Source: Botryllus schlosseri (Eukaryota). From it: a stretch of 64,000 nt of DNA. Both the position numbers and the translations under genes were made by a program. Where the stretch lies: positions 15,624,001 to 15,688,000 of the forward strand of contig CM119373.1 of NCBI GenBank assembly GCA_051294905.1. Reading direction: 5' to 3'. Shown piece after piece: positions 2,612-64,000 of this stretch. The notes below the pieces were generated by a model that did not search any database, was not told where the DNA came from, and saw nothing but the letters and a program-made list of their open reading frames with translations. Position 1 is the first letter of the stretch, and the number at the start of each line of letters is the position of its first letter.

Positions 2612-3443
2612 GAAGTCCCAACCCTACTCCCAATGGAGGACTCGACAACATTAACGTGCGCGAGGACCTTCGTCGCCAACTGGGTGGCACGCTTCGGTAT
2701 TCCAGCACACATTTCTTCGGATCGGGGACCGCAATTTACTTCGCATTTGTGGGCCCAAGTCAATCAGCTATTAGGCGTTCTCCTACATAGAACGACCAGT
2801 TTCCACCCACAAGCCAATGGCCTTGTGGAACGCTTCCATAGGCATTTGAAAAGTTCCCTCATGGCGAGACTCACTGGTCCAAACTGGCTGGATGAGCTAC
2901 CATGGGTTCTTTTAGGCATCCGCACAACACCTAAAAGAGGATTTGGACGCCTCTTCGGCCGAGCTTGTGTACGGTGCTCCATTGACGGTTCCGGGCGATT
3001 TTGTTACTTTTTCAGGAGAGAGCGCACATCGGGATTTGCCAACGTTACAGGAGAAGATTCGCAATCTCCTTCCAGCACGTCCTATGTCGCGACACGGCAT
3101 GGTCAAAACCGCATTTCCGGCAAGCTTGGAAGAATGCACATACGTCTTCGTTCGAAAGGATGCACACCGACCAACATTGACCAAACCTTACGACGGACCG
3201 TACAAGGTTCTGAAGAAATCATCGAAATCATTTACGCTATCCATGGGCGGCAGAGCAGAAGTGGTGTCCGTCGATCGTCTGAAGCCGGCGTATATGGACT
3301 TGAACGAACCAGTAAAAGTAGCACAACCTGCGAGACGGGGCAGACCACCGCGGCAAGCAAGTGGGATCGAACAACCGCGCGATCTTCAACATGCAAGAAG
3401 ATCAAAACGCAACAGGCATCCTCCATCTCGCTACGGTTCCTGA
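2612..3443 (+). pseudogene. Ty3/gypsy (CsRn1-like) integrase, 5'-truncated, one +1 frameshift near 2933
   Basis: SDRGPQFTS...FHPQANGLVERFHRHLK core; after the frameshift LDASSAELVYG and a GPY/F motif (KPYDGPYKVL). Truncated upstream by a hAT-like right end (..CCCAACCCTA near 2606). Confidence 0.9.
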
Positions 3444-3469
3444 GGATTCCCGTCGCTGGAGGGGGATGG

Positions 3470-3628
3470 TGTAGCTCTACAAGGCGCGCTCGTAGATCGT
3501 GTCAATTATTTGATTAGCAATTTGTGAATGCTACCGCGTCCCTTTTCTAATGCATGCATGTTGATGCGTTTTACGGTCCGTTACTCTTTTCGCTCGCAAT
3601 AAACGGAGCTCTCGCTTCAGCACCAACA
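3470..3628 (+). repeat. 3' LTR of the gypsy relic (~159 bp)
   Basis: Follows the polypurine tract GGAGGGGGATGG, begins TGT, contains AATAAA and ends ACA. No partner LTR is in the window, so the end is approximate. Confidence 0.65.
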
Positions 3629-4075
3629 AATGTGAAACATCGATCTTAGGAAAACCGATATTCACAGGCCTATAGCTTCATTGGAATGCATTTAATCCTA
3701 GACGCAGAAAAATATACGACATAGGCACTCTCGTGCATATATCGTTAATGATATGCTCGGGTAAAAAGCTGAACTAGAGCTTTCGACATCATCCGCAAAA
3801 TCTTACTTGATAACGTTTACCCTTAATACGTCATCAATCGCGGCACAGAGGTAAAAATACCGCAATTCAACGCAAACAAGTCAGCAGAGTGTACCGAACG
3901 AAGAACCTATGATGTTTGTATCAGTCTACCATGGATTGGTCCCATTTCCACCCGCATTGAAAAACAACTGATTTCCGCGGTCAGAAAGTATTACGACCAA
4001 TGTTCCCTCGAATATCCACGAATCTGCGCGGTTCCACCAACTCATTGCGCGGTCATTTGGACAAGAGTGTGCACT

Positions 4076-6072
4076 ACTCGAGAATGGCAGCATCATCAAA
4101 GACCAGCTTGCAGTAGCAGAAAAGTTTAATCAGTATTTTTGCAACATTGGTCCGGATCTTGCAGCTTCAATACCATACTCCTCCGATGACTTTCTCTCGT
4201 ACTTGAGTCCTGGCCCTCAGAAATCCATTTTTCTTGAGCCGACTAGTAAAGGAGAAGTTGCGATCGTATCATCTGAAATGAAAAGTAACAAAGCAGTAGG
4301 ACCCGATCTCATCCCAACTCACTTTCTGAAGCTAGTCTTTAATATTATTGGTGATGTTATATGCATTTTCTTTAATGAGTCGATACGTCTAGGCATTTTC
4401 CCAGATGCGCTGAAAACTGCCAGAGTAATGCCAGTGTTTAAGAAAGGCTGTAAAAAGCTAATTTCTAACTACCGACCAATATCTGTTTTGCCAAATCTTG
4501 CCACGGTTTTTGAGAAACTGATTGACTGCCGACTAAAGAACTTTTTTGAATTGAATGCAGTACTGTCTCCGACTCAGCATGGATTCAGATCCAACCACAA
4601 CACCAACCATGCAATACTATCAATTGTAACGGACTTTTACAAAACCATCAAGCAAAAAGAAAGTGGCTGCAGCATTTTTATCGATCTCCGCAAAGCTTTC
4701 GACACAGTTAACCACAGAATCTTAAGATACAAGCTAGAACACTATGGAATCAGGGGTATTGCAGCAACTCTACTTGAAGGCTACCTGGCAAACCGCAAAC
4801 AATTTGTTAAACTGGGGTCATTAAGAACGACTACCAGAGATATAACTTGTGGAGTGCCACAAGGCTCAGTCCTTGGGCCGACTTTTTCCTCATTTATATT
4901 AACGACATTGTTAATGCATCTTTATTCCGCACAACGCTATTTGCTGATGATACTCACCTCTTCATAACCTCCAACACTGTCGATGGTTTGCATGCATCTG
5001 TGAATATGGAACTCCCAAAAGTGTCGAGATGGCTCCAAGCAAACAAACTAAGTTTGAATGCAGATAAGACCGAGATGCTCGTTTTAAATAATGTCAGTCA
5101 TAATTTCACTGTGAACGTCAATCATAAACAAATCTCAATATGTGACTCAGCAAAATATCTCGGCGTCACCATTGATTCCAAATTGTCTTGGAAGCAGCAT
5201 ATTGAATGCACAATATCAAAACTAGCTCGGTGTGTGGGAATAATGACCCGTCTCCAATCTTTGGTTTCCAGATCAGTGCTACGAACCATCTACTTCTCTC
5301 TTTTCCACTCTCATCTGCAATATGGAATCGTAGTATGGGGAAATGCATGCACAACATTTTTGTGCAGAATTCGAACCCTGCAAAACCGTGCGATACGGCT
5401 GATCTCATCTGTACCTTTACGTACCAATTTATCGCCTTACTACCGTAAGCATCGAATTTTGCGAGTTGATGAACTATATCGCTTCGAAGTATCAAAAGTT
5501 GTTCACAAATATTTTTCCAATAGTCTGCCTACTGTGTTTGATGACTTTTTCATACCTGCTAAACATGTCCATTCCCATCACACGAGATCCTCGTCTTAAG
5601 GAAACATCTACTTACCCCCACCCAATAGCAACCTAACCCCCACCCAATAGCAACCTAACTAAGAGAGATCTATCGACTACTCGGGACCTATCATCTGGAA
5701 TGCATTACCACCACATATCCGTGAATTGCCTTATAATAGATTCAAAAAAGCCCTACTTGATCACCTCTTGTCGTTACACTAACACTGTTGCCCTACCTCG
5801 CCCAGACATTCCTTTATTGATCATTTGCCACCATTGTTTGATTTTTTTTCTATTTTCCTTTAACTAAACATTTCTTTACAGCCAGACTGTTCAGAGTCAA
5901 GTGTACTTGTTTGATGCTCGTGTGATCAGACTAGATGACCTTCACGGTCTTATCGAGCATTCCTATCTAATACCGAATACTGTGCAGGTGCACGCATATT
6001 TTCTGTACCACCATCACTGCCGTTTGTTATGTATTTTGGTTCGATGAAAATAAAGACTCTCTCTCTCTCTCC
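4076..6072 (+). mobile_element. 5'-truncated L2/CR1-clade LINE: RT domain, 3' UTR and (CT)n tail
   Basis: NYRPISVL, QHGFR, FIDLRKAFDTVNH, GVPQGSVLGP and FADD motifs. Frameshift near 4880, stop at 5597, 22-bp tandem duplication at 5615-5658. 3' end has GACTAGATGACC..GGTC hairpin, AATAAA and CT repeats. Confidence 0.92.
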
Positions 6073-31830: not shown

Positions 31831-33785
31831 GTGGAAGTAGAATTTATGAAATTGTGTAGTGGTAAAGTGTACCAGTCAAAAAGTGATACCGATATGTCCA
31901 AAGAAAAGAATACGGAACTTGACGTGATAGATAGAACATTGGCAATATTTAAAGATGTACCTAATCCTTCGACTAAAAAGGGTAAACCTCTCGGTGCGCG
32001 CGCAAAGGAGGGTCACTTAAAAGTTGAACCAACCACGGAACGGGCCAGTAGTACGTTTCCCCGGGTAGATGCTGACCACGAGCTCGGAGCCGTTGGCGGA
32101 GTAAAGGGGGTTGCGTCTGCGGCATCGGCAGACGATGTCGCGGAATTGGGGGACAAAATGCCCCACCGATCTGGTAGGGAAAGTAGTGATTCAGAACCCT
32201 GTGATATGGGGGAAACGAACGTGATGCGCCCAAGCAACAGCCAATACGAGGTGAACATAAAAATATTCGCGAGTTAAGTGACGGGGGAACCCAGTACAAC
32301 TCAGTTTCGATGTGCTTACAGAGGCGGACGCACTGTATGTGCCACCTCGGGGAAATAATTTCGGCGAAAATAGTGGGCATCAGAATAGATTACCACTTGA
32401 CAGCGGAGTGCGCCAGGAACCTCAAGGGGTGGTTCCGAAACCTAGAGCAGGGAGACAGAGCAGCCGTCCAGAAGGGCCGGGAGTGAGTAGAGATCCCTCT
32501 CCGCGAAAACGAAAGTGTACTGGTTTGAGACGAGTCGATGGGCCGGAACATTTGACAGGGCGCAGCTCAAAGGCTCAGGAGGTAGAAGGTCGGAACGTCC
32601 AGACTCCGATAGCACGTGACCGAGGCCGTGAGCGCGAGGCAGAAGTTCGCAATGTTGATACTTGATCAAGCGGAAGCAGAGGACTTTCGAGGGTTTATGA
32701 AACGATGGCAGAGTCAAGCGATGAGGGGCCTTTGCCCCCACGACGACTGGTCATGTCGGATCACAGAGACAGTGTGCGTAGCAGGCGGTACACGAGAGAA
32801 GTGGAGAGTAGTGATAGCGAACCTCTGGTTAGAAGCAAGGGTAGGAGGCGCGAGATCACTATCAATCGTCCATTTAACAAGCTTGAGCCGGCGCGGTATT
32901 TCAGAATATTAGAGCATCAGCTCGAGGGTGAGAATGTACGGTCACAAAAAGCTAGATATCTCATTTTGTTGAAGAACTTGAATGATGCACACTTAGCCAC
33001 TATTGAGGGGAGTATTCCTAGCCCACATGATCCTAATTGTTACGATTTGCTTAAAAAGGTTTTGTTGGACCGTTTTGATGCTCCGATTAATCAGAAGTTC
33101 AATAACTTTTATGCCGAGGCAGTTCCGGGCATGAACCCCAGATCTTTGAAATCGCTGATTAATGTATGCGCAGGGTCCGATAATTCGCCGTATATCGTGG
33201 GAATCAAGCGCCACACGTTCTTGGAGTACTGTAGGCCCGACATTGCTTTCATGTTACGTGCAATTCCGACAGACGATTTCGACACTATGTGTCACCGCGC
33301 GGTTGAGCTGTTTAATGGGGGATCAAATCCGGGTAGCAGTTCCATTCAAACTAATGAGGTCAGCGTGGAAAAACAGGGAAAGAAGCGCGTGCTTAGATCT
33401 GAGGAAGATACGCAGTTGATCGAGTCGATGAGTAGGCAACTTGTTATTATGGAGAAGCAAATGGCGGAGTTGAAGGTAGCTGGTGTTAAAGTGCAACCAA
33501 GAGGAGTTAGTGAGAGGCCTGTAAATGAGCCGTCGAGAAATGATGCTGGATCAGGCGGAGGTAGCAATGGCAATTCGGACAATGGCCGCACGTGGCAGGA
33601 TCATCCTGAGTCACACCGCGGTCGCGGAAGAGGGTTTTACACCGTGTGGTCGCGGAAGGGAGTATTACCGTGGCGGTAATGTTTGTGCTGGTAGCGGTAG
33701 TAATACCGAATGGACATGCCAAAATCATCATCGGTATGATGATCGGAGCTACTCATGTTATGCCGGGTGTAAATATTGGTCCTAG
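31831..33785 (+). pseudogene. Ty3/gypsy gag (CsRn1-like), frameshifted
   Basis: N-terminal MKLCSGKVY; capsid-like region (F.ILEHQL...SQKARY...PNCYDLLKKVLLDRF); C-x2-H-x9-C-x3-C motif at 33717-33770. Confidence 0.8.
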
Positions 33786-34783
33786 TATAAATTCTTTTGA
33801 TTTTGAGTATCTGGCTTATGTGTTTGATAAATTAAATGGTTTTGATTTCTTGAGTGACAGTGGTTCCATGATTTCAAATTTACCAGCGAGTAAACACGTG
33901 ATTCGGCATTATACGCCGAAATGGCAATTTCGGGGAGCAAATGTGTCTGTGATTAATGCTCATGGCACTAAAACTTTGATGTTGCAGTTCGATGATAATG
34001 AGCCACTTGAATGTCCTTTTGTAATAACGGAAGTGTCGAAGCCAATATTGGGTTTGAATTTCATGAAAAAGCATAAGTTGCTTTTGGATCCGGAGCTTGA
34101 TGAGCTCGCGACTTGTGACCGCAGTGTTGTTATTAAATTGTCTCAAAATAAATTTTCGTCTATCGTCGCGCATATTGATGCAAGTGAACGCACGCCATAC
34201 GCCGATTTACTTGAAGAGTTTCCGGAGATCTTGGTCCGGCAGCCTGTGAAACGGCGCGATATGAAACATGACATGAGAATAAAAACGTTCGGTTATTTAA
34301 AATCTCCAAAACCGCGGTCGATCCCACCTCAGTATTTATTAGAAGTTGGGCGGCAAATTAATGATATGTTGGAGCGCGGTGTAATTTCAAAATCGGATTC
34401 GGATTTTTGCTCGCCGATCGTGTGTGCTCCAAAGCAGAGTCACGTTGAGGGGAAACCTCTCGGTGTACTGCTGTGCATCGATTATCGGTATTTGAATTCG
34501 CATGCTGCCCCTCAATGTTATCCATTACCGAATATTGCGTCAATGCGAACGCAGATAGCAGGGACCAAATAAGTCTTTTCCGCGCCTCATATTGCGAGCG
34601 CGTATCGTAATATCGAGGTCAGTTGTAATTTCAGTATAATATGTGTCTGAGGTTTTCGGTCCAGTGGGGATCATGCAAATTGGCATATGAACTGCTTGGT
34701 GACATTCCTAATCCTTTTCTGTATTGTGATGATATTGTTGTGGCAACGCCCGACGAGAAGTCTCATTTGGCGACGTTGCATGT

Positions 34784-46802: not shown

Positions 46803-46994
46803 CTCCGCATATTTCGCCTCCCTGCAGAATTCGATCAGCAAGGCCGCCGCAGAGCAAAACACGATCGTGTGCGACGGATCGCGAACTCCCCTCTCCCGAA
46901 AACGAGACAACACGGTCACCAGCATTTCTATCGGCGCAGCGCCTTGGTCGTCGGTGGCCAACACTTGAGAAGTTTGCGATCGCGTACTGGGATT
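46803..46994 (-). CDS. ASPM: ASPM exon, C-terminal ARM/HEAT-like region (NPSTRSQ...IEMLVTVLSRFRERG...IVFCSAAALL..YAE)
   Basis: 64 whole codons between AG and GT; aligns with recalled IDILLELLQIYREK..SIFTKTCCLL. Confidence 0.8.
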
Positions 46995-50835: not shown

Positions 50836-50968
50836 TACCTGAAATATCGGAGAGGCTCTACTGCTACACCATAAATCAATACTATGCAAAATAAAATTAA
50901 GTCCTTGGTCTTTCAGTGTTAATTACGGCATCAACGATAACCTATACATGGGAAGTGTGGTCACTCAC

Positions 50969-51123
50969 TTGCAACAAGTTGAGCAAGATGCTGATGGAAA
51001 AGTGCTGCACGAATGACGCGTGAAAGCTACGATTGGAAGAGCTGATCAGCTTGCAGAGCACGAGGGTGCCTCCTTCGTCTGAAATCCTATCGCAACAGTA
51101 CGGCAACAGCTTCGAAAGCGATA
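50969..51123 (-). CDS. ASPM: ASPM exon (SLSKLLPYCCDRISDEGG...SSNRS...ILLNLLQ)
   Basis: TTTCAG acceptor, GTGAGT donor, phase 1 to 0; matches recalled TRLSPLCCENM...RSCNRS...VLLNV. Confidence 0.9.
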
Positions 51124-51239: not shown

Positions 51240-51424
51240 TGAGGTCCTCCAGGCACGAGTACACGACGTCATACGATTTGGAGTCGAGCAGGAGGGCGAG
51301 ATTGGAATTCATTCTGTTGCAGATTTTTCGTTCCGGGTGTTGTCTCGCGATATGGGTGGCTTTCATGCACTTCTCCTTGGCGGTCACAAGCTTGGCGTTC
51401 ATGATGTGTTTCCGTACTTGGTAT
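51240..51424 (-). CDS. ASPM: ASPM exon (YQVRKHIMNAKL...SNLALLLDSKSYDVVYSCLEDL)
   Basis: CGCAG acceptor, GTGAGT donor, phase 2 to 1; joins the giant exon as VYRG-YQVRK. Confidence 0.88.
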
Positions 51425-52422
51425 CTGCGAAAAGTTAAATGTTCATCGTGTGATACTTTAGCAGTAGCAGGTGTGGGAGTGATTTTGTATGTGTGAACAG
51501 CCTTTAGAACAGTCACCCCCCAGTTAGAGACAACTACTTTTGTGTTCAAGAACGGTAGATGTCCTTAAACCGAACGGAGGTGTCAAATTAAAGATACTGC
51601 CAAGTGATAATTTTATCTTCAATTTCAGCCAACATCATATTCTACAGAGCACTTTCCCATAAATGATATATTTGATTAATTTCAGGGTTAATGATATGGA
51701 TTTGGTTTGAGGGGCAGTGATATAAAACCAGAAACCACTGGGCTACAGTTTGAATATAGTTGATTATAATAAGTAATAGGCCTACACATATAATTAGAGT
51801 TTGGTTTTGATTGGGGTTAGGATACGGTGAACGTGCCCTCATTACAATCCATTACTGCAACACACTAAGTCATCGCATTATTGGTTTTTCGTCTATCAGT
51901 CCTGATACTTGGAAAATAGGGCCAGGAACTGTCAGGACTATGGAAAATTACGATATTATGAATGTAAGCCATTCTATGTCACTCGAACAGTGTTGAAAAA
52001 AGTGGGTTGAAATTGATTGAACTGAAAATTAAACACTGAATACAATGACTTGGACTTACAACAGCACGACTCGCACTCGAGTCAAACCTATAAAAGTGAG
52101 ATCGACTTGTGACTCAGAACCTGACTTGGGGTGACGACCCTGGCCATCAGTCATTTTTCGCTTTCCGCGAAATTGCAAACTTGGAAGTCCATATTCCCGA
52201 TTAACTGCCAAAAGTGCTCAACACCTCCACAACAACTACTTTCTGAAACTACTCAGTCAAGTAGTTTTTTCAGACCCAACATTTTCTATCTCTCTTGTTT
52301 GAAACTGCTGCTACTTCTACTTGCAAGGTTCCGTATCTGAGCAGAAATTGACAGTGTGACTTCTCCTTCTACTAAAGTAGCAACACTGAATACTTAACAG
52401 TACAGCAACAAACAAAACTCAC

Positions 52423-55400
52423 CCACGATACACTCGTTGAACAAGACAAGCTGCATTTTCCTTGGATCTCTCTCGCAGAATCAGCCTCCATCTCCGTTGG
52501 ACAGCAATGGTAGCAGCGCGTAGAGTTCTAAATTTCCGCACCGCGATAAATCTTCGCACGTGAGACTGAATGACGACGATGGATCGGAGATGAAGGAAAT
52601 CGTATCGTTTGGCCGTTTCTCTCAATTCTACGAGTCGCTTGCCAGCCGCCCGCATTCTCCAAAACGACTGAATCACCACAACACTCTTCAGTATCTTTTT
52701 ATATTGCAGGCGCTGCCGTCTCATTTCGAGCACTGCTCTCCATTGCCGCTGAATTTTAATTGTAGATTTTAGAATCTTGAGGTACCGCTGGTGTTGAAGT
52801 CTCATTTCAAGTACTGCTCTCCATCTCTGCTGAATCATGACAGCGCTTTGTTGCACCTTTCGGAATTTATTTTGTTGCTGCCTCATTTCGATCATTGCTC
52901 TCCATCTTTGCTGAATCACGAGTGCACTGCTCTGCATTGTTTGATATTCCTTTCTTTGCAATCTCATTTTGAGCATTGCTCTCCAACTACGCTGGATAAC
53001 AAGGCAGTACCGGCGGGTCCTCGTGTATTCTTCACTTTGAGATCTCATTTCAAGCGTTGCTTTCCATTTTCGCTGTATCACAACAGTACTTCTTACAATC
53101 AGTTGATACCTTCTTCTTTGCGATCTCATTTGAAGGGTTGCCCTCCATTTTCGCTGGATGAAAATCGTGCTACCTTTGAGCTTGTGGTACTCATTTTGCA
53201 TTGATCTCATTTCAAGAGTCGCTCTCCATCTTTGCTGAATCACAGAGGCACTGCTTTGCAGCTCAAGGTATTTCTCCTGCTGGGATCGCATTGTCAATGT
53301 CGCTCTCCACCTCCGTTGCACCGCAAGTGCTGACAGCTGGAGCTGTCGATATTCCTCTCGATCAGATCTCATTTTGAGCATTGCTCTCCACCATCGCTGT
53401 ATCACAACCACTGTGACCCTGATTTCTTGATACGCTTGCTTTTGTCTTCTCATTTTGAGCGTTGCTCGCCATTTTCGCTGTATCAAAAGCACACTTTGGC
53501 GCATATCGAGATAGTCTCTACGTTCACAGTCGCTTTGAAGCCTTGATCTCCATTTTTGTTGAATCACAACAGAGCATTCTTGAAGTTTACGGAATTTGCT
53601 TCGTTCCATTCTCATTTCGAGTGTCGCTCTCCATTTCCGTTGAATCACAAGAGCACTTCTCAGCTGTTCTTGATATTTATTCTGTTGCGATCTCATTTTG
53701 AGCGTCGCCCTCCATTTGCGCTGAAGCACAAGTGCACTTCTTTGCAGTTTCTGATATCCGTTTTGCTCCATTCTCATTTCAAGAGTTGCTCTCCACTTCC
53801 GCTGAATCACGAGAGCACTCCTTTGCAGTTCTTGATATTCATTCCGTTGCAATCTCATTCTAAGTGTCGCCCTCCATTTTCGTTGAATCACAACGGCACA
53901 GTCTCGAAGTTTACGGAATTCGCTTTGCTCCATTCTCATTTCGAACGTCGCTCTCCATTTCCGCTGAATCACAAGAGCACTTCTTTGCAGATCCTGATAT
54001 TCATGGTGTTGCGATCTCATTTCAAGTGTTGCTCTCCATTTTCGCTGAATCACAACAGAGCATTCTTGAAGTTTCTGGAACTTGTTCTGTTCCATTCTCA
54101 TTTCAAGCGTCGCCTTCCATTTTCGTTGAATCACAAGAGCACTTCGCAGCTGATTTTGATATTCATTCCGTTGCGTCCTCATTTCAAGCGTCGCCTTCCA
54201 TTTTCGTTGAATCACAAGAGCACTTCGCAGCTGATTTTGATATTCATTCCGTTGCGTCCTCATTTCAAGCGTCGCCTTCCATTTTCGTTGAATCACAAGA
54301 GCACTTCGCAGCTGATTTTGATATTCATTCCGTTGCGTCCTCATTTCAAGCGTCGCCTTCCATTTTCGTTGAATCACAAGAGCACTTCGCAGCTGATTTT
54401 GATATTCATTCCGTTGCGTCCTCATTTCAAGCGTCGCCTTCCATTTTCGTTGAATCACAAGAGCACTTCGCAGCTGATTTTGATATTCATTCCGTTGCGT
54501 CCTCATTTCAAGCGTCGCCTTCCATTTTCGTTGAATCACAAGAGCACTTCGCAGCTGATTTTGATATTCATTCCGTTGCGTCCTCATTTCAAGCGTCGCC
54601 TTCCATTTTCGTTGAATCACAAGAGCACTTCGCAGCTGATTTTGATATTCATTCCGTTGCGTCCTCATTTCAAGCGTCGCCTTCCATTTTCGTTGAATCA
54701 CAAGAGCACTTCGCAGCTGATTTTGATATTCATTCCGTTGCGTCCTCATTTCAAGCGTCGCCTTCCATTTTCGTTGAATCACAAGAGCACTTCGCAGCTG
54801 ATTTTGATATTCATTCCGTTGCGTCCTCATTTCAAGCGTCGCCTTCCATTTTCGTTGAATCACAAGAGCACTTCGCAGCTGATTTTGATATTCATTCCGT
54901 TGCGTCCTCATTTCAAGCGTCGCCTTCCATTTTCGTTGAATCACAAGAGCACTTCGCAGCTGATTTTGATATTCATTCCGTTGCGTCCTCATTTCAAGCG
55001 TCGCCTTCCATTTTCGTTGAATCACAAGAGCACTTCGCAGCTGATTTTGATATTCATTCCGTTGCGTCCTCATTTCAAGCGTCGCCTTCCATTTTCGTTG
55101 AATCACAAGAGCACTTCGCAGCTGATTTTGATATTCATTCCGTTGCGTCCTCATTTCAAGCGTCGCCTTCCATTTTCGTTGAATCACAAGAGCACTTCGC
55201 AGCTGATTTTGATATTCATTCCGTTGCGTCCTCATTTCAAGCGTCGCCTTCCATTTTCGTTGAATCACAAGAGCACTTCGCAGCTGATTTTGATATTCAT
55301 TCCGTTGCGTCCTCATTTCAAGCGTCGCCTTCCATTTTCGTTGAATCACAAGAGCACTTCGCAGCTGATTTTGATATTCATTCCGTTGCGTCCTCATTTC

Positions 55401-58056
55401 AAGCGTCGCCTTCCATTTTCGTTGAATCACAAGAGCACTTCGCAGCTGATTTTGATATTCATTCCGTTGCGTCCTCATTTCAAGCGTCGCCTTCCATTTT
55501 CGTTGAATCACAAGAGCACTTCGCAGCTGATTTTGATATTCATTCCGTTGCGTCCTCATTTCAAGCGTCGCCTTCCATTTTCGTTGAATCACAAGAGCAC
55601 TTCGCAGCTGATTTTGATATTCATTCCATTGCGTCCTCATTTCAAGCGTCGCCTTCCATTTTCGTTGAATCACAAGAGCACTTCGCAGCTGATTTTGATA
55701 TTCATTCCATTGCGTCCTCATTTCAAGCGTCGCCTTCCATTTTCGTTGAATCACAAGAGCACTTCGCAGCTGATTTTGATATTCATTCCGTTGCGTCCTC
55801 ATTTCAAGCGTCGCCTTCCATTTTCGTTGAATCACAACGGCACAGTCTCGAAGTTTACGGAATTCGCTTTGCTCCATTCTCATTTCGAGCGTTGCTCTCC
55901 ATTTCCGCTGAATCACCAAGGAGCTTTCTTGAAGTTTCCGCAACTTGCTTTGTTCCATTCTCATTTCAAGCGTTGCTCTCCATTTTCGCTGAATCGTTAG
56001 AGCATTTCTTCGAACTGTTTGGTAATAATTCTGTTGCAATCTCATTTCACACATTGCCCTCCTTGTTCGCTGAATTACAATAGCACTATTTCGCAGCTTC
56101 TGATATTCATTCTGTTCGATTCTCATTTTGAGCGTTGCCCGCCATTTTTGCTGAATCACAACAGCGCTTCTTTGGAGCTTCTGATATTCGTTCTGCTGCA
56201 ATCGCATCTCGAACGTGGCTCTCCATTTTCGTTGAATCACAATAGCACTTCTACAAAGCTTTTGATATTCACTCTGCTGCAGTCTCATTTCGAAGGTCGC
56301 TCTCCATCTTTGCTGAATCACAATCGAGCTTCTTTGCAGCTGCAAATATTTGTTCCGTTGCGACCTCATTTCGAGCGTCGCCCTCCATTTTGTCTGTATC
56401 AAAACAGCACTTCTTCGAATTGCTTGGTATTCGTTCTGTTGCAATCTCATTTGAAACGTTGCCCGCCATCTCTGCTGAACCACGACGGCACTTCTTTGCA
56501 ACTCCTGATATGCGTTTCGTTGCAGTTTCATTTCAATCATTGCCCGCAGTCGTCGCTGGATTACAAGGACTGATTTACGCAGTTTTTGATAATGCTTCCG
56601 TTGAACCCTCATTTCAAGAATTGCTCTCCATTTCCGCTGAACCAAAAGAGCACTTCTTTGCAGTTTCTGATATTCATTCTGTTGCAATCTCATTTCAAGC
56701 GTTGCTCTCAACCTGCGTTGTATCACAAGTGCAGCTCTTCGCATATTCTGATATCGTTGACGTTGCAGTCTCATTTCCCGGATTGCTCGCCATCGTCTCT
56801 GCGAGACAAGCGAAGCTTCCCTCAAACTCTGATATTTCGTTCTTTGTAATCTCATTTCTAGGATCGCTCTCCATCTCCGTTGCGTGACAATCGAAGCATT
56901 TCTCAGTGTCTGATATTTCATTCTTTGCAATCTCATTTTCAGCGTTGCTCTCCACTTCCGCTGAATCACAAGCGAAGCGTTTTTCAAAACGATGTACTTG
57001 TTTAATTGAGATCTCATTTCGAGCGTTGCTCTCCACCTGAGCTGAATCACAACAGCGCTCTTGCGCATCTCCTTGTATTCTTTTTGTTGTAATCTCATTT
57101 CGAGCGTCGCTCTCCACCTGCGCTGAATCACAAGGGCAGCTTTTTTCAGATCTAGATATTCTTTGCGTTGCGATCTCATTTCAAGAGTAGCCCTCCACTT
57201 TTGCTGAATAACAACAGCTCTTCTGCGCATCTCCAGGTATTCTTTTCGGCGCAATCTCATTTCAAGCATCGCTCTCCACTTTCGCTGAATCTTGATAGCG
57301 CGTCCACGGGACTCGAGGTATTCTCTTCGTAGCAATCTCATTTCGAGAGTCGCTTTCCATCTCTCCTGGATTAAAGCAACACTTCGGAGCATTTCCCGGT
57401 ATTGTTTTTGCTGCAATCTCATTTCCAGCGTTGCTCTCCACCTATGCTGAATCACAAGTGAAGCTTTTTTCAGATCAAGATACTCGTTCAGTTGTGATCT
57501 CATTTCAAGCTTTGCTCTCCACCTTTGCTGAATCACAAGTGAAGCTTTCTTGAGATCAAGATACTCATTTCGTTGCGATCTCATTTCGAGCGTCGCTCGC
57601 CACCTTTGCTGAATCACAACAGCTCGTCCACGCATCTCCAGGTATTCTTTTTGGCGCGATCTCATTTCAAGTGTCGCTCTCCACTTTTGCTGTATCACCA
57701 CAGCACCAGCCAACACTGCTCTATACTTTACACGCTGTTTCCTCATTTCAAGAGTTGCTTTCCAGCGTTGTTGTATCGAGATGGCCGAGGCAATCTCCAG
57801 TCTTCTTCGAGAGATAGTTTTTCGAGCTATAAAGCCACGGATATACGATTGCAATCTTACAATGCAACATTTTGTATCGAGGTATTTTTGCCGCTGTGAT
57901 TTCATCGCGGTGTAGCTTCTCCATTGTGCTTGTATGATTCTGGCGGAACTGTGTTCCAAACGCCTTCTCTCTCTTAACTTTCTTGTGACTTGTCGAGACC
58001 GCCATAGTCTCTGGATCAGCATGGCCGCAGATACCTCCTTCAAGTGACGATACTTT
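52423..58056 (-). CDS. ASPM: ASPM giant IQ-repeat exon (5,634 nt, about 70 IQ motifs)
   Basis: Uninterrupted frame of IQxxWR repeats; TTCTAG acceptor and GTGAGT donor, phase 2 to 2; flanked by CH-domain and C-terminal ASPM exons. Confidence 0.95.
54098..55837. repeat. Coding minisatellite: 21 near-identical 81-bp units plus a partial unit
   Basis: Unit encodes KWKATLEMRTQRNEYQNQLRSALVIQR; only two units differ (R to W, near 55628 and 55709). Confidence 0.97.
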
Positions 58057-58588
58057 CTAGAAGTGAAATGACATGGTTTGAAAACTTTGTAAAAATTGAA
58101 TACAAAAGTGAAATATACACTGAAATAATATATGTTATTCACAATGCAAATATACGAAAACGCAACCTTCAGGGGCGGTCGTCAGCAAATGAGTATTTAC
58201 AAAAACTTGAGTGAAACTACGTTACATACATCCCAATATGATACAGTACAAATATAATAAAACACAAAATACAGGCAAATTAGTGGCCTGCTTCGGCTGA
58301 AAGTCTTGGTGTAGCACAGAATGCTGAACGACACCCTGTTGGTGACAAGTGGCTTTATGATTTCAGCATTAGACCACTGGACTAGAATCTAAAATTTATA
58401 CCGGTACTAAATCATTGCGCTTAGCTATACTAGAAATGCAATAATCCTAGTATGCACGCACACGCTTGATGATGTTAATACATCTGAGTCATTCATTACA
58501 CACTAGGATGGTCCTTAAAAACGAATTTTGGAAAGGGATGTTTTGGCAGGGTCAGACCAAAAACTTGAAAACTTTTCAAATTTTGTAC

Positions 58589-58909
58589 CTGAATGCTCTC
58601 TGTATGATGATAGCAGATTCCCGTTTCGTCGTGAAAACTGCGACTTCTTTCCTGGCCAGTAGCGTGGCTTTCCACCGACGCTGCAGGACAGTGACGGCGC
58701 TTCTTTGCATCATGTAGGCATCTCGAGCCATCTTTCCGATTCGGTAATTGCGATACGATCGTTGGATTTTCAAAACTGCCTCCCTCTTCTTGACAAAGGC
58801 TTTACGAATCAGTAAGCATCTCCAATGGTTTTGAATTACCAGGGCCGCACACGTTCTGGCTTTGCGTTCTGCCAGCAGGTGCGTGCTTCGTTTTCTTTCC
58901 AAGTAGCCG
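58589..58909 (-). CDS. ASPM: ASPM exon, 4 IQ motifs
   Basis: TTTTAG acceptor, GTACAA donor, phase 2 to 2; IQNHWR, IQRSYR, LQRRWK, IQRAFR. Confidence 0.92.
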
Positions 58910-59133
58910 CTAAAAAAGGTGATTCCGAGATCAATTCAGTGTTGGATCATAATATTATGCAACAAAACACAGGTCTGGCTGGTAAGGGGGGGGGGGGGGG
59001 TTGCAACCTTTTTACTACTCACGGCTGCATTTCGATTATTTACCTACTGCCGCATTCCATGGAATAGCCGTAATTGGACGCAAAATACCTATGTTAAACT
59101 GTCCATCTCCATTTCCAGTAAACTCTGCACTAA

Positions 59134-60973: not shown

Positions 60974-61255
60974 CGGAAGAAAGCCTGGATCTTGACGGCA
61001 GATTTCCTCATTTCTAGAAACTGCAGTCGGACTGGTCTGGCTTCACGACGCAGTCTCCACATTCTCTGAATGAGAACGGCCGCCATTCTCCTTCTCTCGA
61101 TCTCTTTACGAAGTAGATATTTGCGGAAGGCCTTTTGTATCACGACAGCGGCTTGGTTTTGTCGTCTTCGCAATTCTGCAGCCGTCCTACGGGCTTCGAG
61201 AGCTTGTTTCTTGAAACGATATGCTCGCCAGACAATTTGAATCGTTCTTGCAGCA
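60974..61255 (-). CDS. ASPM: ASPM exon, first 4 IQ motifs (AARTIQIVWRAY...IQAFFR)
   Basis: (CT)n-ATAG acceptor, GTATGT donor, phase 2 to 2. Confidence 0.92.
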
Positions 61256-62278: not shown

Positions 62279-62533
62279 TTAAAATGCGCTGAAAACTGGA
62301 GACCGATGCACCGAACGCCACAGTTGAGAGCAGAGATGGGAATTTTTCAGTAGTCAACACAGTAGTCACAGAAGTATGGTAAGTATTCCCATAAGTATCT
62401 TCCATTGATAAGCCGCTTGGATCCGGGTACTCAAATCGTTGTGCCCTGCACCATGAGCGCCATAAATATAATATATCCGTAGAATACAAGACAAAAAGTC
62501 GAAGGCAGGTGTATGGAATACAAACAAACTCAC

Positions 62534-62694
62534 CGATCTTGTGAGCTAATGTCCAAGAGTCTGGAGCAGAGGAAGGATAACAACAAGCGGACCACTTTCT
62601 CATCCGGAATCGTATTGCAAATGTCGTCGATACGCAACAGGTTCGGGATGCCGCCCATTGCGTACAACGCCTTTTGGACCAACCGAAGATTTGC
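62534..62694 (-). CDS. ASPM: ASPM exon, end of second CH domain (GGIPNLL..DICNTIPDEKVV..LLSFLCSRLLD)
   Basis: Highly diagnostic NTIPDEKVV...SFLC.RLLD motif; GT-AG, phase 0 to 2. Confidence 0.95.
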
Positions 62695-63480
62695 CTGAAC
62701 GAGATTATAATTGTCTAGCTGCGTTTAGATGTCATTACCGAGCATTTTGCAGTGAAATGTCCCCTGTCGCCAAGTCTAAATATCCAGCTCAGCTTACAAT
62801 AGCAACAAATAACACAGAAACTGTCACAAAAAACACCGTGAACTAAGCTTAGTATCACAACCGAACATTTAATCTAAGATTGTCACCAGTCATTTTGCCC
62901 CGCAATTTCGTAAGTAGGATTAGTTAGATTAGTAAGATTATCTGGTAAAAGTAAGCAGTCCATCGACGAAATCTAGTTTTTGAAAAGTACTCGAGTACTC
63001 TTCAGCTCTTTCATTTCAAACTTACACTCAGAGTCACTTTATCACGTCTTAGAAAAGCTACCTCGACTTGCAATAGAGCAGAAATTTAGTTTACTGTACC
63101 GCTGTACTATGATCATCAGTTCACTGTGACATTTTATATCCCTATCCTACAGCTCTGCTTTCATTCAACCTTTTTCTCCTATTCATGATATGAACTATGC
63201 AATGTTTGCAATGCTGAGATTTTCACCATTAAAATTACCAGAGGCGAAGTAATATAATTATGACCATCACATGCCAATAGAAAATCTTATAAGAAGTCAT
63301 TGAAGAGGCCATTGGAGGTACAGACTTGAAGCACACAATAGAATAATATATTCAATCATTGATATTGAAAATTATTTAAAATACATTATTATTTGCTGAC
63401 GACTACCCCTGGCGAGAGTCAGTCAAAACTATTCAGGTGTATTTCAATATCAATATACCATATATACACATGGAACACAC

Positions 63481-63552: not shown

Positions 63553-63616
63553 CTGCAGAAAAAAACATCCGCATTGAAAAACATCCATACCCTTAGTCAA
63601 AGAAAATTAAACTCAC

Positions 63617-63847
63617 ACTCGGTTCGTTGAGGCCTTTCATATTAAAAGTGGTCGCCATATTGACGTGAGCGATATTGACGAGACCGGACTGGTACTGGCT
63701 GATCAGACATGCCAGGACACGTCCGTCGCTGAAGGAAGCCGCGAAATTGTACACGGGTATCAATTTGAAGGCGCAGACAAGCCGAGACCATTCCAGTAAT
63801 AGCCGAGAGATGGTAGACAGCGCGGATTTTGAGCCTGGGACAGTTTT
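63617..63847 (-). CDS. ASPM: ASPM exon, second CH domain start (LLLEWSRLVCAF...VYNFAASFSDGRVLACLI)
   Basis: SFSDGRVL CH motif; TTTCAG acceptor, GTGAGT donor, 77 whole codons. The gene continues beyond the window end. Confidence 0.93.
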
Positions 63848-64000
63848 CTGAAAAAGATACCGACATAGTCAATGGCTGGGCATCAAGTTACGATGAAATA
63901 AAAAGAGTGACTCAGCTAGAGTTGTATGGATGGAATCGCCGGAAGAAGAGTTTCAAAATGCGCAAGTAGAAGCAGACCTAACGGCCTTTAAAAATCTGCA

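Follow-up and report, generated by a model that had tools for sequence, protein, structure and literature searches.

The window analysed here is a stretch of 64,000 nt of Botryllus schlosseri (NCBI GenBank assembly GCA_051294905.1, contig CM119373.1, positions 15,624,001 to 15,688,000), and it carries on its minus strand a large part of an ASPM/Asp gene with an array of 78 IQ-like motifs. The interior of this array is built from a single unit type of 27 amino acids (aa), while a 73-aa triplet builds the long arrays of other animals from sponge to vertebrates. The best explanation as a whole, to which we give a probability of about 0.8, is a tunicate ASPM in which the triplet was replaced by its 27-aa member and the array grew by unequal crossing-over in steps of 81 bp; most of its copies are old, and one block of them is young. 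What is new here is modest: a chordate with a 27-only array, the inferred derivation of 27-only arrays from the 27-aa member of the triplet, and a young in-frame block of 21 copies. Positions are those of the window unless stated otherwise.

The giant IQ exon (58056..52423, minus strand) is 5634 bp long, has 1878 codons and is contained in a minus-strand open frame of 1907 codons (58142..52419). Its limits were given exactly by the original prediction, which had been made from the letters of the window alone. On the acceptor side, a pyrimidine-rich tract with ...ttctAG ends at 58057, directly before 58056; on the donor side, the consensus G/GTGAGT follows 52423, and the stop codon of the open frame sits within this donor. 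In the open frame, a regular expression for a loose IQ pattern found 68 motifs, and 62 of the spacings between them were 27 aa exactly. When the exon was read unit by unit in pieces of 27 codons, 67 consecutive units were found in one register, followed at the C-terminal end by three IQs in another register, which makes 70 motifs. The two preceding exons on the same strand encode four IQ motifs each. Exon A (61255..60974) is the start of the array and is recognised by Pfam IQ with 42 bits (cut-off 20.3); exon B (58909..58589) has motifs of mixed type and spacing, and its splice sites were read from the sequence. The earlier hand count of about 70 motifs in the 5.6-kb exon and eight in the two exons before it, about 78 together, agrees with 70 + 4 + 4 = 78, and the spacing described then as almost always 27 aa corresponds to the 67 units in strict register.

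Exons A and B and the giant exon, when spliced, encode 2078 aa with no stop codon. The spacings across the array are 34, 23, 27, 30, 23, 27, 27, 19, 27, 27 and 26 aa, then 27 throughout; this stretch is interrupted by a single spacing of 54 aa over a degenerate unit, and the array ends with 34, 23 and 20. Altogether, 66 spacings are of 27 aa. Tandem Repeats Finder detected a period of 81 bp (34.6-46.6 copies, score up to 3617), which is far beyond chance. No codon was gained or lost in any of the 27-aa units of the giant exon, so the unit length itself is conserved. The consensus of the unit is ALVIQRKWRATLEMRtQRNEYQnqlRS; I4, Q5, R9 and R15 are retained in the units, and A replaces the canonical G of the IQ motif. 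Between 52000 and 58000, GC and AT skew are strongly negative on the plus strand over the exon. The cause is simple, as the K/R/E/Q codons of the repeat on the minus strand are purine-rich.

The same motif count was run on more than 300 retrieved homologues, and names were looked up for the key ones. A 23-23-27 triplet was found in the sponge Dysidea (88 IQ in an array of 2284 aa), the crinoid Antedon (86 IQ), the crayfish Procambarus (89 IQ, 2134 aa), Penaeus, a sea spider, Lottia and three bivalves (54-62 IQ), the brachiopod Lingula (59 IQ) and vertebrates from ray to mammals (70-92 IQ). Long arrays across animals have about 55-90 IQ and 1300-2300 aa, and the array of the window, with about 2080 aa, is at the upper end of this range, where it is matched by sponge, crayfish and ray. 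Insects have uniform 27-aa spacing, in arrays that hold 17-41 spacings of this length and measure 780-1400 aa, about half as long. The array of a centipede has mixed spacing. The run of 27-aa spacings in the window is the longest among the homologues compared, its host is a chordate, and no 23-23-27 alternation runs through its array. Because crustaceans, chelicerates, molluscs, an echinoderm, vertebrates and a sponge share the triplet, the triplet is taken as ancestral and the 27-only array as derived; as shown by comparison, the ancestral animal array would have been made of 73-aa triplets, each with two units of 23 aa and one of 27 aa. The long triplet arrays from sponge to vertebrates likewise indicate that large size is ancestral and that fly and worm are reduced outliers.

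Other patterns were also seen among the homologues. The hagfish array (P0038) has strict 23-27 alternation, in the crinoid array (P0202) about 30 units of 23 aa follow one another without a break, and the copepod Lepeophtheirus has yet another spacing pattern. Among the top matches to the array are P0122, a metagenome contig's open frame of 6.9 kb, and P0212, which is a transcript of run SRR6474597. P0122 and P0131, both from ENA metagenome contigs, are 2290 and 1770 aa long and consist nearly entirely of a perfectly regular 23-23-27 array with 92 and 72 motifs, respectively; they are probably giant ASPM exons of eukaryotes in metagenome assemblies.

By its consensus, the window's unit is similar both to the 27-aa triplet member of other phyla and to the insect unit. 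For each of the three triplet classes a position matrix was made from 11 triplet-type species, and the matrices were used with one species left out at a time. In this leave-one-out test, the 27-aa class was recognised in 93/93 cases with 23 positions and in 84/93 with 16 core positions. The window's distinct interior units, 39 (or 36) of them, were all assigned to the 27-aa class (mean margin 23 nats for the 39), and so were all insect units tested. At the edges of the array several units were scored instead as 23-aa types; these edges comprise exons A and B, the first three units of the giant exon and the final IQs. Mixed edges and a uniform interior imply that the ends keep the ancestral mixture and that one unit type took over the interior. 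On this comparison, the lineage-specific change is the replacement of the triplet by a single unit type, and by convergence the outcome resembles the array of insects.

The gene, present in one copy, is the ASPM/Asp orthologue of a sea squirt, with the order ASH domain, two CH domains, IQ array and C-terminal region. Domain order and database matches bear out the name that had been proposed for it. The ASH domain (PF15780, 39 bits, cut-off 27) was found at G000:C3:15717851-15718015 on the minus strand, equivalent to window positions 93851-94015, about 36 kb upstream on the strand of the gene and just beyond the window; tblastn to the N-termini of orthologues agrees. With ASPM of frog, hare, ray, scallop, limpet, crinoid and sponge, tblastn gave colinear exons from window-equivalent 94,039 down to 50,945, and directly before the IQ array the colinear matches to the CH region have 45-65% identity to ASPM orthologues. 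ASPM/Asp proteins were matched in phmmer by the giant exon with E down to 1e-234, and they are the best database matches of the whole IQ array with E down to 1e-251. Nothing above about 40% identity to the array was found in the protein searches, and no retrieved protein exceeds about 47% identity when the non-IQ exons are summed. A second IQ array was not found in the 495-Mb genome, and a second copy or paralogue is ruled out by its lack in the assembly.

The CH-domain exon (63868..63596, minus strand, limits of the open frame) has 23 bits with Pfam CH (E 9e-5), below the cut-off of 26; the match is only partial because introns split the domain. The end of the second CH domain is encoded by an exon at 62724..62533 (minus strand, limits from open frame and alignment), with 46-56% identity to orthologues in tblastn. 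A C-terminal profile was built from 70 ASPM tails. It matched parts of C-terminal exons at 51393..51241 (profile positions 18-66, E 2e-4) and 51115..50960 (positions 70-121, E 1.5e-9), both on the minus strand and both also matched in tblastn. A probable further C-terminal exon on the same strand at 46931..46806 (positions 133-168, E 0.012) is colinear but weak alone, and the last part of the ASPM tail was not found with this profile. N-terminal exons between 76 and 92 kb are poorly conserved and could not be placed. The gene spans at least 47 kb, with its 5' third beyond the window, and the mapped parts suggest a protein of about 3400-3700 residues.

The host genome encodes a fused cellulose synthase with GT2 and GH6 domains, which is not known from animals other than tunicates, so the genome is that of a tunicate. 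Mitochondrial COX1 (PF00115) had no match in the assembly. GT2 (C9:15029174-15029719) and GH6 (C9:15025585-15025875) are on the minus strand of a chromosome-scale contig and split by introns, with GT2 3.3 kb upstream. A second GT2/GH6 pair is at C9:15068570 and 15088346 (locus 15068570-15088831), also on the minus strand and with introns. The two cellulose-synthase-like loci are about 40-60 kb apart, and CesA appears to be duplicated in tandem in this genome.

Units of the array differ in age. Most of them have 60-85% DNA identity to the nearest partner unit. Near the 5' end of the array there is an old higher-order duplication of about four units (57075..57764, minus strand), with a 324-bp period and 74-79% identity in Tandem Repeats Finder; the best partners within it are units 5/10, 6/11 and 8/12 at 79-84% identity. 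Some related units are not neighbours; for example, unit 27 has 93% identity to unit 51, and unit 49 has 86% to unit 55. According to unit-by-unit DNA identities, units 28-48 form a young block of 21 tandem 81-bp units (55841..54141, minus strand). The 18 units from 31 to 48 (54141..55598) do not differ from one another, a single shared C>T sets units 29 and 30 apart from them, and unit 28 differs at two positions. The expansion of the block must be very recent, with 18 copies still free of any substitution. It contributes about 20 motifs and 540 aa, and without it the array would have about 1550 aa and 57-58 motifs, which is an ordinary size.

Three contig sets were compared with the window over positions 54990-58960, a stretch that includes half of the young block. 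X15 and X18 behave as RNA and are from different studies, and X12 is a DNA contig set. In X15 and X18, the word depth of the 81-bp unit exceeds that of the flanks only by a factor of about 3-4.6 (44 vs 12-16; 24 vs about 6), not about 20, and X12 has no contig on the block; word depths of contig sets are not copy numbers, however, and holes in such sets prove nothing. Together with the 18 units that lack any substitution, these data would fit an assembly artefact or a rare expanded allele, with a usual protein of about 57-60 IQ motifs. We regard this as unlikely. A mismatch-free contig of 111 nt in the independent run X18 is 81+30 long, which is the length of a perfect 81-bp tandem in a k=31 graph; another sample thus carries at least two identical copies side by side. 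The block is in frame, 1.7 kb long and in a clean chromosome-scale contig, where usual long reads would be expected to span it. The C>T private to units 29 and 30 is what real stepwise duplication predicts. The copy number of the block is that of the assembly alone, and the low word depth is only a hint that it may differ among individuals. In X15, one contig departs from unit 28 at 55776; it probably derives from the similar units 51-52, outside the stretch compared.

The original prediction had described an invertebrate-type Asp gene whose short array expanded independently to mammalian size, so that the IQ number would be convergent with that of mammals. The literature figures on which it drew hold: there are 2 IQ motifs in C. 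elegans, 24 in Drosophila and 74-81 in human, where they form a higher-order repeat, and mouse has about 60 (PMC374243, PMC10047693, PMC10436222). The interior units are all of one type, and therefore most of them come from lineage-specific duplication; in insects, which share this unit type, such units number only about 20-41. Both facts speak for an independent expansion, but convergence in size is rather improbable in view of the long arrays in sponge, crinoid, molluscs, brachiopod, crustaceans and vertebrates. At both of its ends the array keeps a mixture of 23- and 27-type units, as in triplet arrays, and the spacings of 34-23-20 at its end are near the 23-18-23 at the array ends of other animals. 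Moreover, it is to vertebrates and not to insects that tunicates stand as sister group. The claim of convergent expansion is thus to be given up for the number of motifs, as long arrays are ancestral, and kept for the units, most of which come from lineage-specific amplification. Among the homologues compared, long arrays are widespread, and the 27-only composition was seen in insects and in this gene. The label of an invertebrate type is misplaced, since the 27-aa unit is an insect-like derived state and a large IQ number is the rule in invertebrates.

The RNA-like contigs (X15, X18) lie on parts of the giant exon and of exon B and leave the intron 58057-58588 empty, whereas this intron is covered by the DNA set X12. 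One X15 contig of 2270 nt joins 58589 to 58056; the 532 bases skipped are bounded by CT..AC, or GT..AG when read on the minus strand. Both RNA-like sets have contigs that stop or are joined at 58910 and 58589, and the loose ends at 58910 match the 3' end of exon A. Between individuals, 29 single-nucleotide polymorphisms (SNPs) were listed in the exon, 18 synonymous and 11 not, and the replacements are mostly conservative (K/R, I/L, A/V). Individuals differ by about 1.2% over the exon and by about 4% over the intron, a level in keeping with a marine invertebrate that spawns by broadcast. For 42 older units, the proportion of synonymous differences (pS) is 0.67 (dS about 1.7, near saturation), that of nonsynonymous differences (pN) is 0.28, and dN/dS is 0.21. 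In these units Q5 is invariant, and I4, W8, R9, A10, L12, M14, R15 and Y21 are nearly so. Splice junction, SNPs and unit divergence show that the array is transcribed and under purifying selection. A pseudogene is ruled out by the open frame, the splice junction in the RNA-like contigs, and pN/pS. In the intron before the giant exon, at 58096-58164, X12 has 136 other letters in place of 67 bases, which is an indel polymorphism between individuals.

It is very improbable that the giant exon is mostly skipped or internally spliced and that the working protein has few IQ motifs: one X18 contig departs from the exon at 56618, but RNA-like contigs are on many parts of the exon and on its 5' junction, and purifying selection acts along it. 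This X18 contig matches 56400-56618 and continues with 248 nt that are absent from the window and from the assembly; an internal splice at 56618 was rejected, as there is no acceptor AG at the break and the foreign part is not in the genome, and the contig is probably chimeric.

Several points weigh against the replacement of the triplet in a tunicate ASPM with an old array and one young block, beside the word depth of the block, its absence from X12 and the source of its copy number, all given above. Raw RNA reads of run X23 on the compared stretch are only four, which gives no read depth for copy number. Exon-skipping isoforms of ASPM are known in human and may also exist here. No other tunicate ASPM was retrieved in the protein searches, so the 27-only state may belong to tunicates as a whole, to a family or to this species; a literature search found no paper on tunicate ASPM. 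Pfam IQ (PF00612) scores the giant exon with 44 bits as a sum, and no single unit passes alone. Calmodulin binding by the 27-aa units is assumed by analogy, and single units match Pfam IQ weakly.

Vertebrate ASPM (human MCPH5) has the same domain order, and the non-IQ exons are 43-46% identical to it. In human, exon 18 of about 4.7 kb is a single giant IQ exon (PMC3459963). The giant exon of the window, with 5.6 kb, is larger, and the IQ number (78 vs 74-81 in human) and array length (about 2080 aa vs about 1750-2150 aa in mammal, frog and ray) are similar. In contrast to the 23-23-27 arrays of vertebrates (23-27 in hagfish), the interior here is of 27 aa only, with 23-aa units in the giant exon just at its ends. 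The block of 21 near-identical units is a feature of the window's gene and not of vertebrate ASPM. Insect Asp (Drosophila abnormal spindle and its counterparts in beetles, bugs, caddisflies and cockroaches) has the same uniform 27-aa spacing and the same unit class, and it gives the best-scoring database matches to the array; it has about 17-41 27-aa units (780-1400 aa), as against 66 27-aa spacings here. The likeness to insect Asp is convergent, since the nearer relatives of insects and of the tunicate (crustaceans, vertebrates and crinoid) keep the triplet. Myosin lever arms, such as those of myosin V with six IQs, are likewise tandem IQs on one helix, each of which is expected to carry a calmodulin-like light chain, so that a stiff rod would form. 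The window's gene differs from them in having tens of motifs instead of 1-6 and no motor domain. A sequence search of solved structures with the array gave no match, and the protein atlas returned generic IQ clusters only, below its own reliability mark.

AlphaFold2 predicted seven units as one unbroken helix with a pLDDT (predicted local distance difference test) of 93.6. By extension of this model, the region of about 2080 aa may be one continuous alpha-helix, and by analogy with Drosophila Asp and IQ lever arms about 78 calmodulin or calmodulin-like light chains could be bound to it, one per unit. This would make a stiff rod of about 0.3 µm (2078 residues × 0.15 nm), linking the microtubule-binding N-terminus to the C-terminal region and probably serving minus-end cross-linking and spindle-pole focusing. 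When the Asp-calmodulin interaction is disrupted, spindle poles are unfocused and centrosomes detached (PMC4674283; PMC10047693). The much longer rod that had been expected from the letters alone would be longer than that of the fly, but no longer than that of frog, ray or sponge.

The period of 27 residues corresponds to 7.5 helical turns and would place neighbouring light chains on opposite faces of the helix. With the 73-residue triplet the pattern would advance by about 100 degrees, unlike the 27-only geometry. A more far-reaching idea is that the 27-only array is a functional redesign and not drift, that it was rebuilt twice (in hexapods and in the tunicate lineage) with an altered arrangement of light chains, and that rod length is still polymorphic in 81-bp steps; we hold this as speculative and unlikely in its full form. 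If it were true, there would be a half-turn offset per unit, perhaps with another light chain bound, and a spindle-pole protein would be polymorphic in length.

Mobile elements have left open frames at 2633-5599 and 31831-34572, downstream of the ASPM gene and beside it. They include an integrase-like frame (2633-3517), a reverse transcriptase of non-LTR (long terminal repeat) type (4203-5599), and gag with protease/pol-like frames (32705-34572).

The number of IQ motifs in ASPM was once read as tracking brain size, and Ponting is said to have noted already in 2006 that many IQ motifs occur outside mammals. The argument drawn from this window against tying brain size simply to IQ number is valid, but reviews have made the point already: according to them the IQ number is constant across diverse mammals and its expansion is not primate-specific (PMC3123551). 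The accepted view of the function of ASPM is unchanged by these findings. They mean that long arrays are the general animal condition and that it is the repeat architecture that varies between lineages. For research on IQ rods and spindle poles, the triplet appears as conserved from sponge to vertebrates, with two independent replacements by the 27-aa unit alone, one in insects and one in a chordate. The in-frame block of 21 copies, if it is polymorphic, would offer a natural series of rod lengths.

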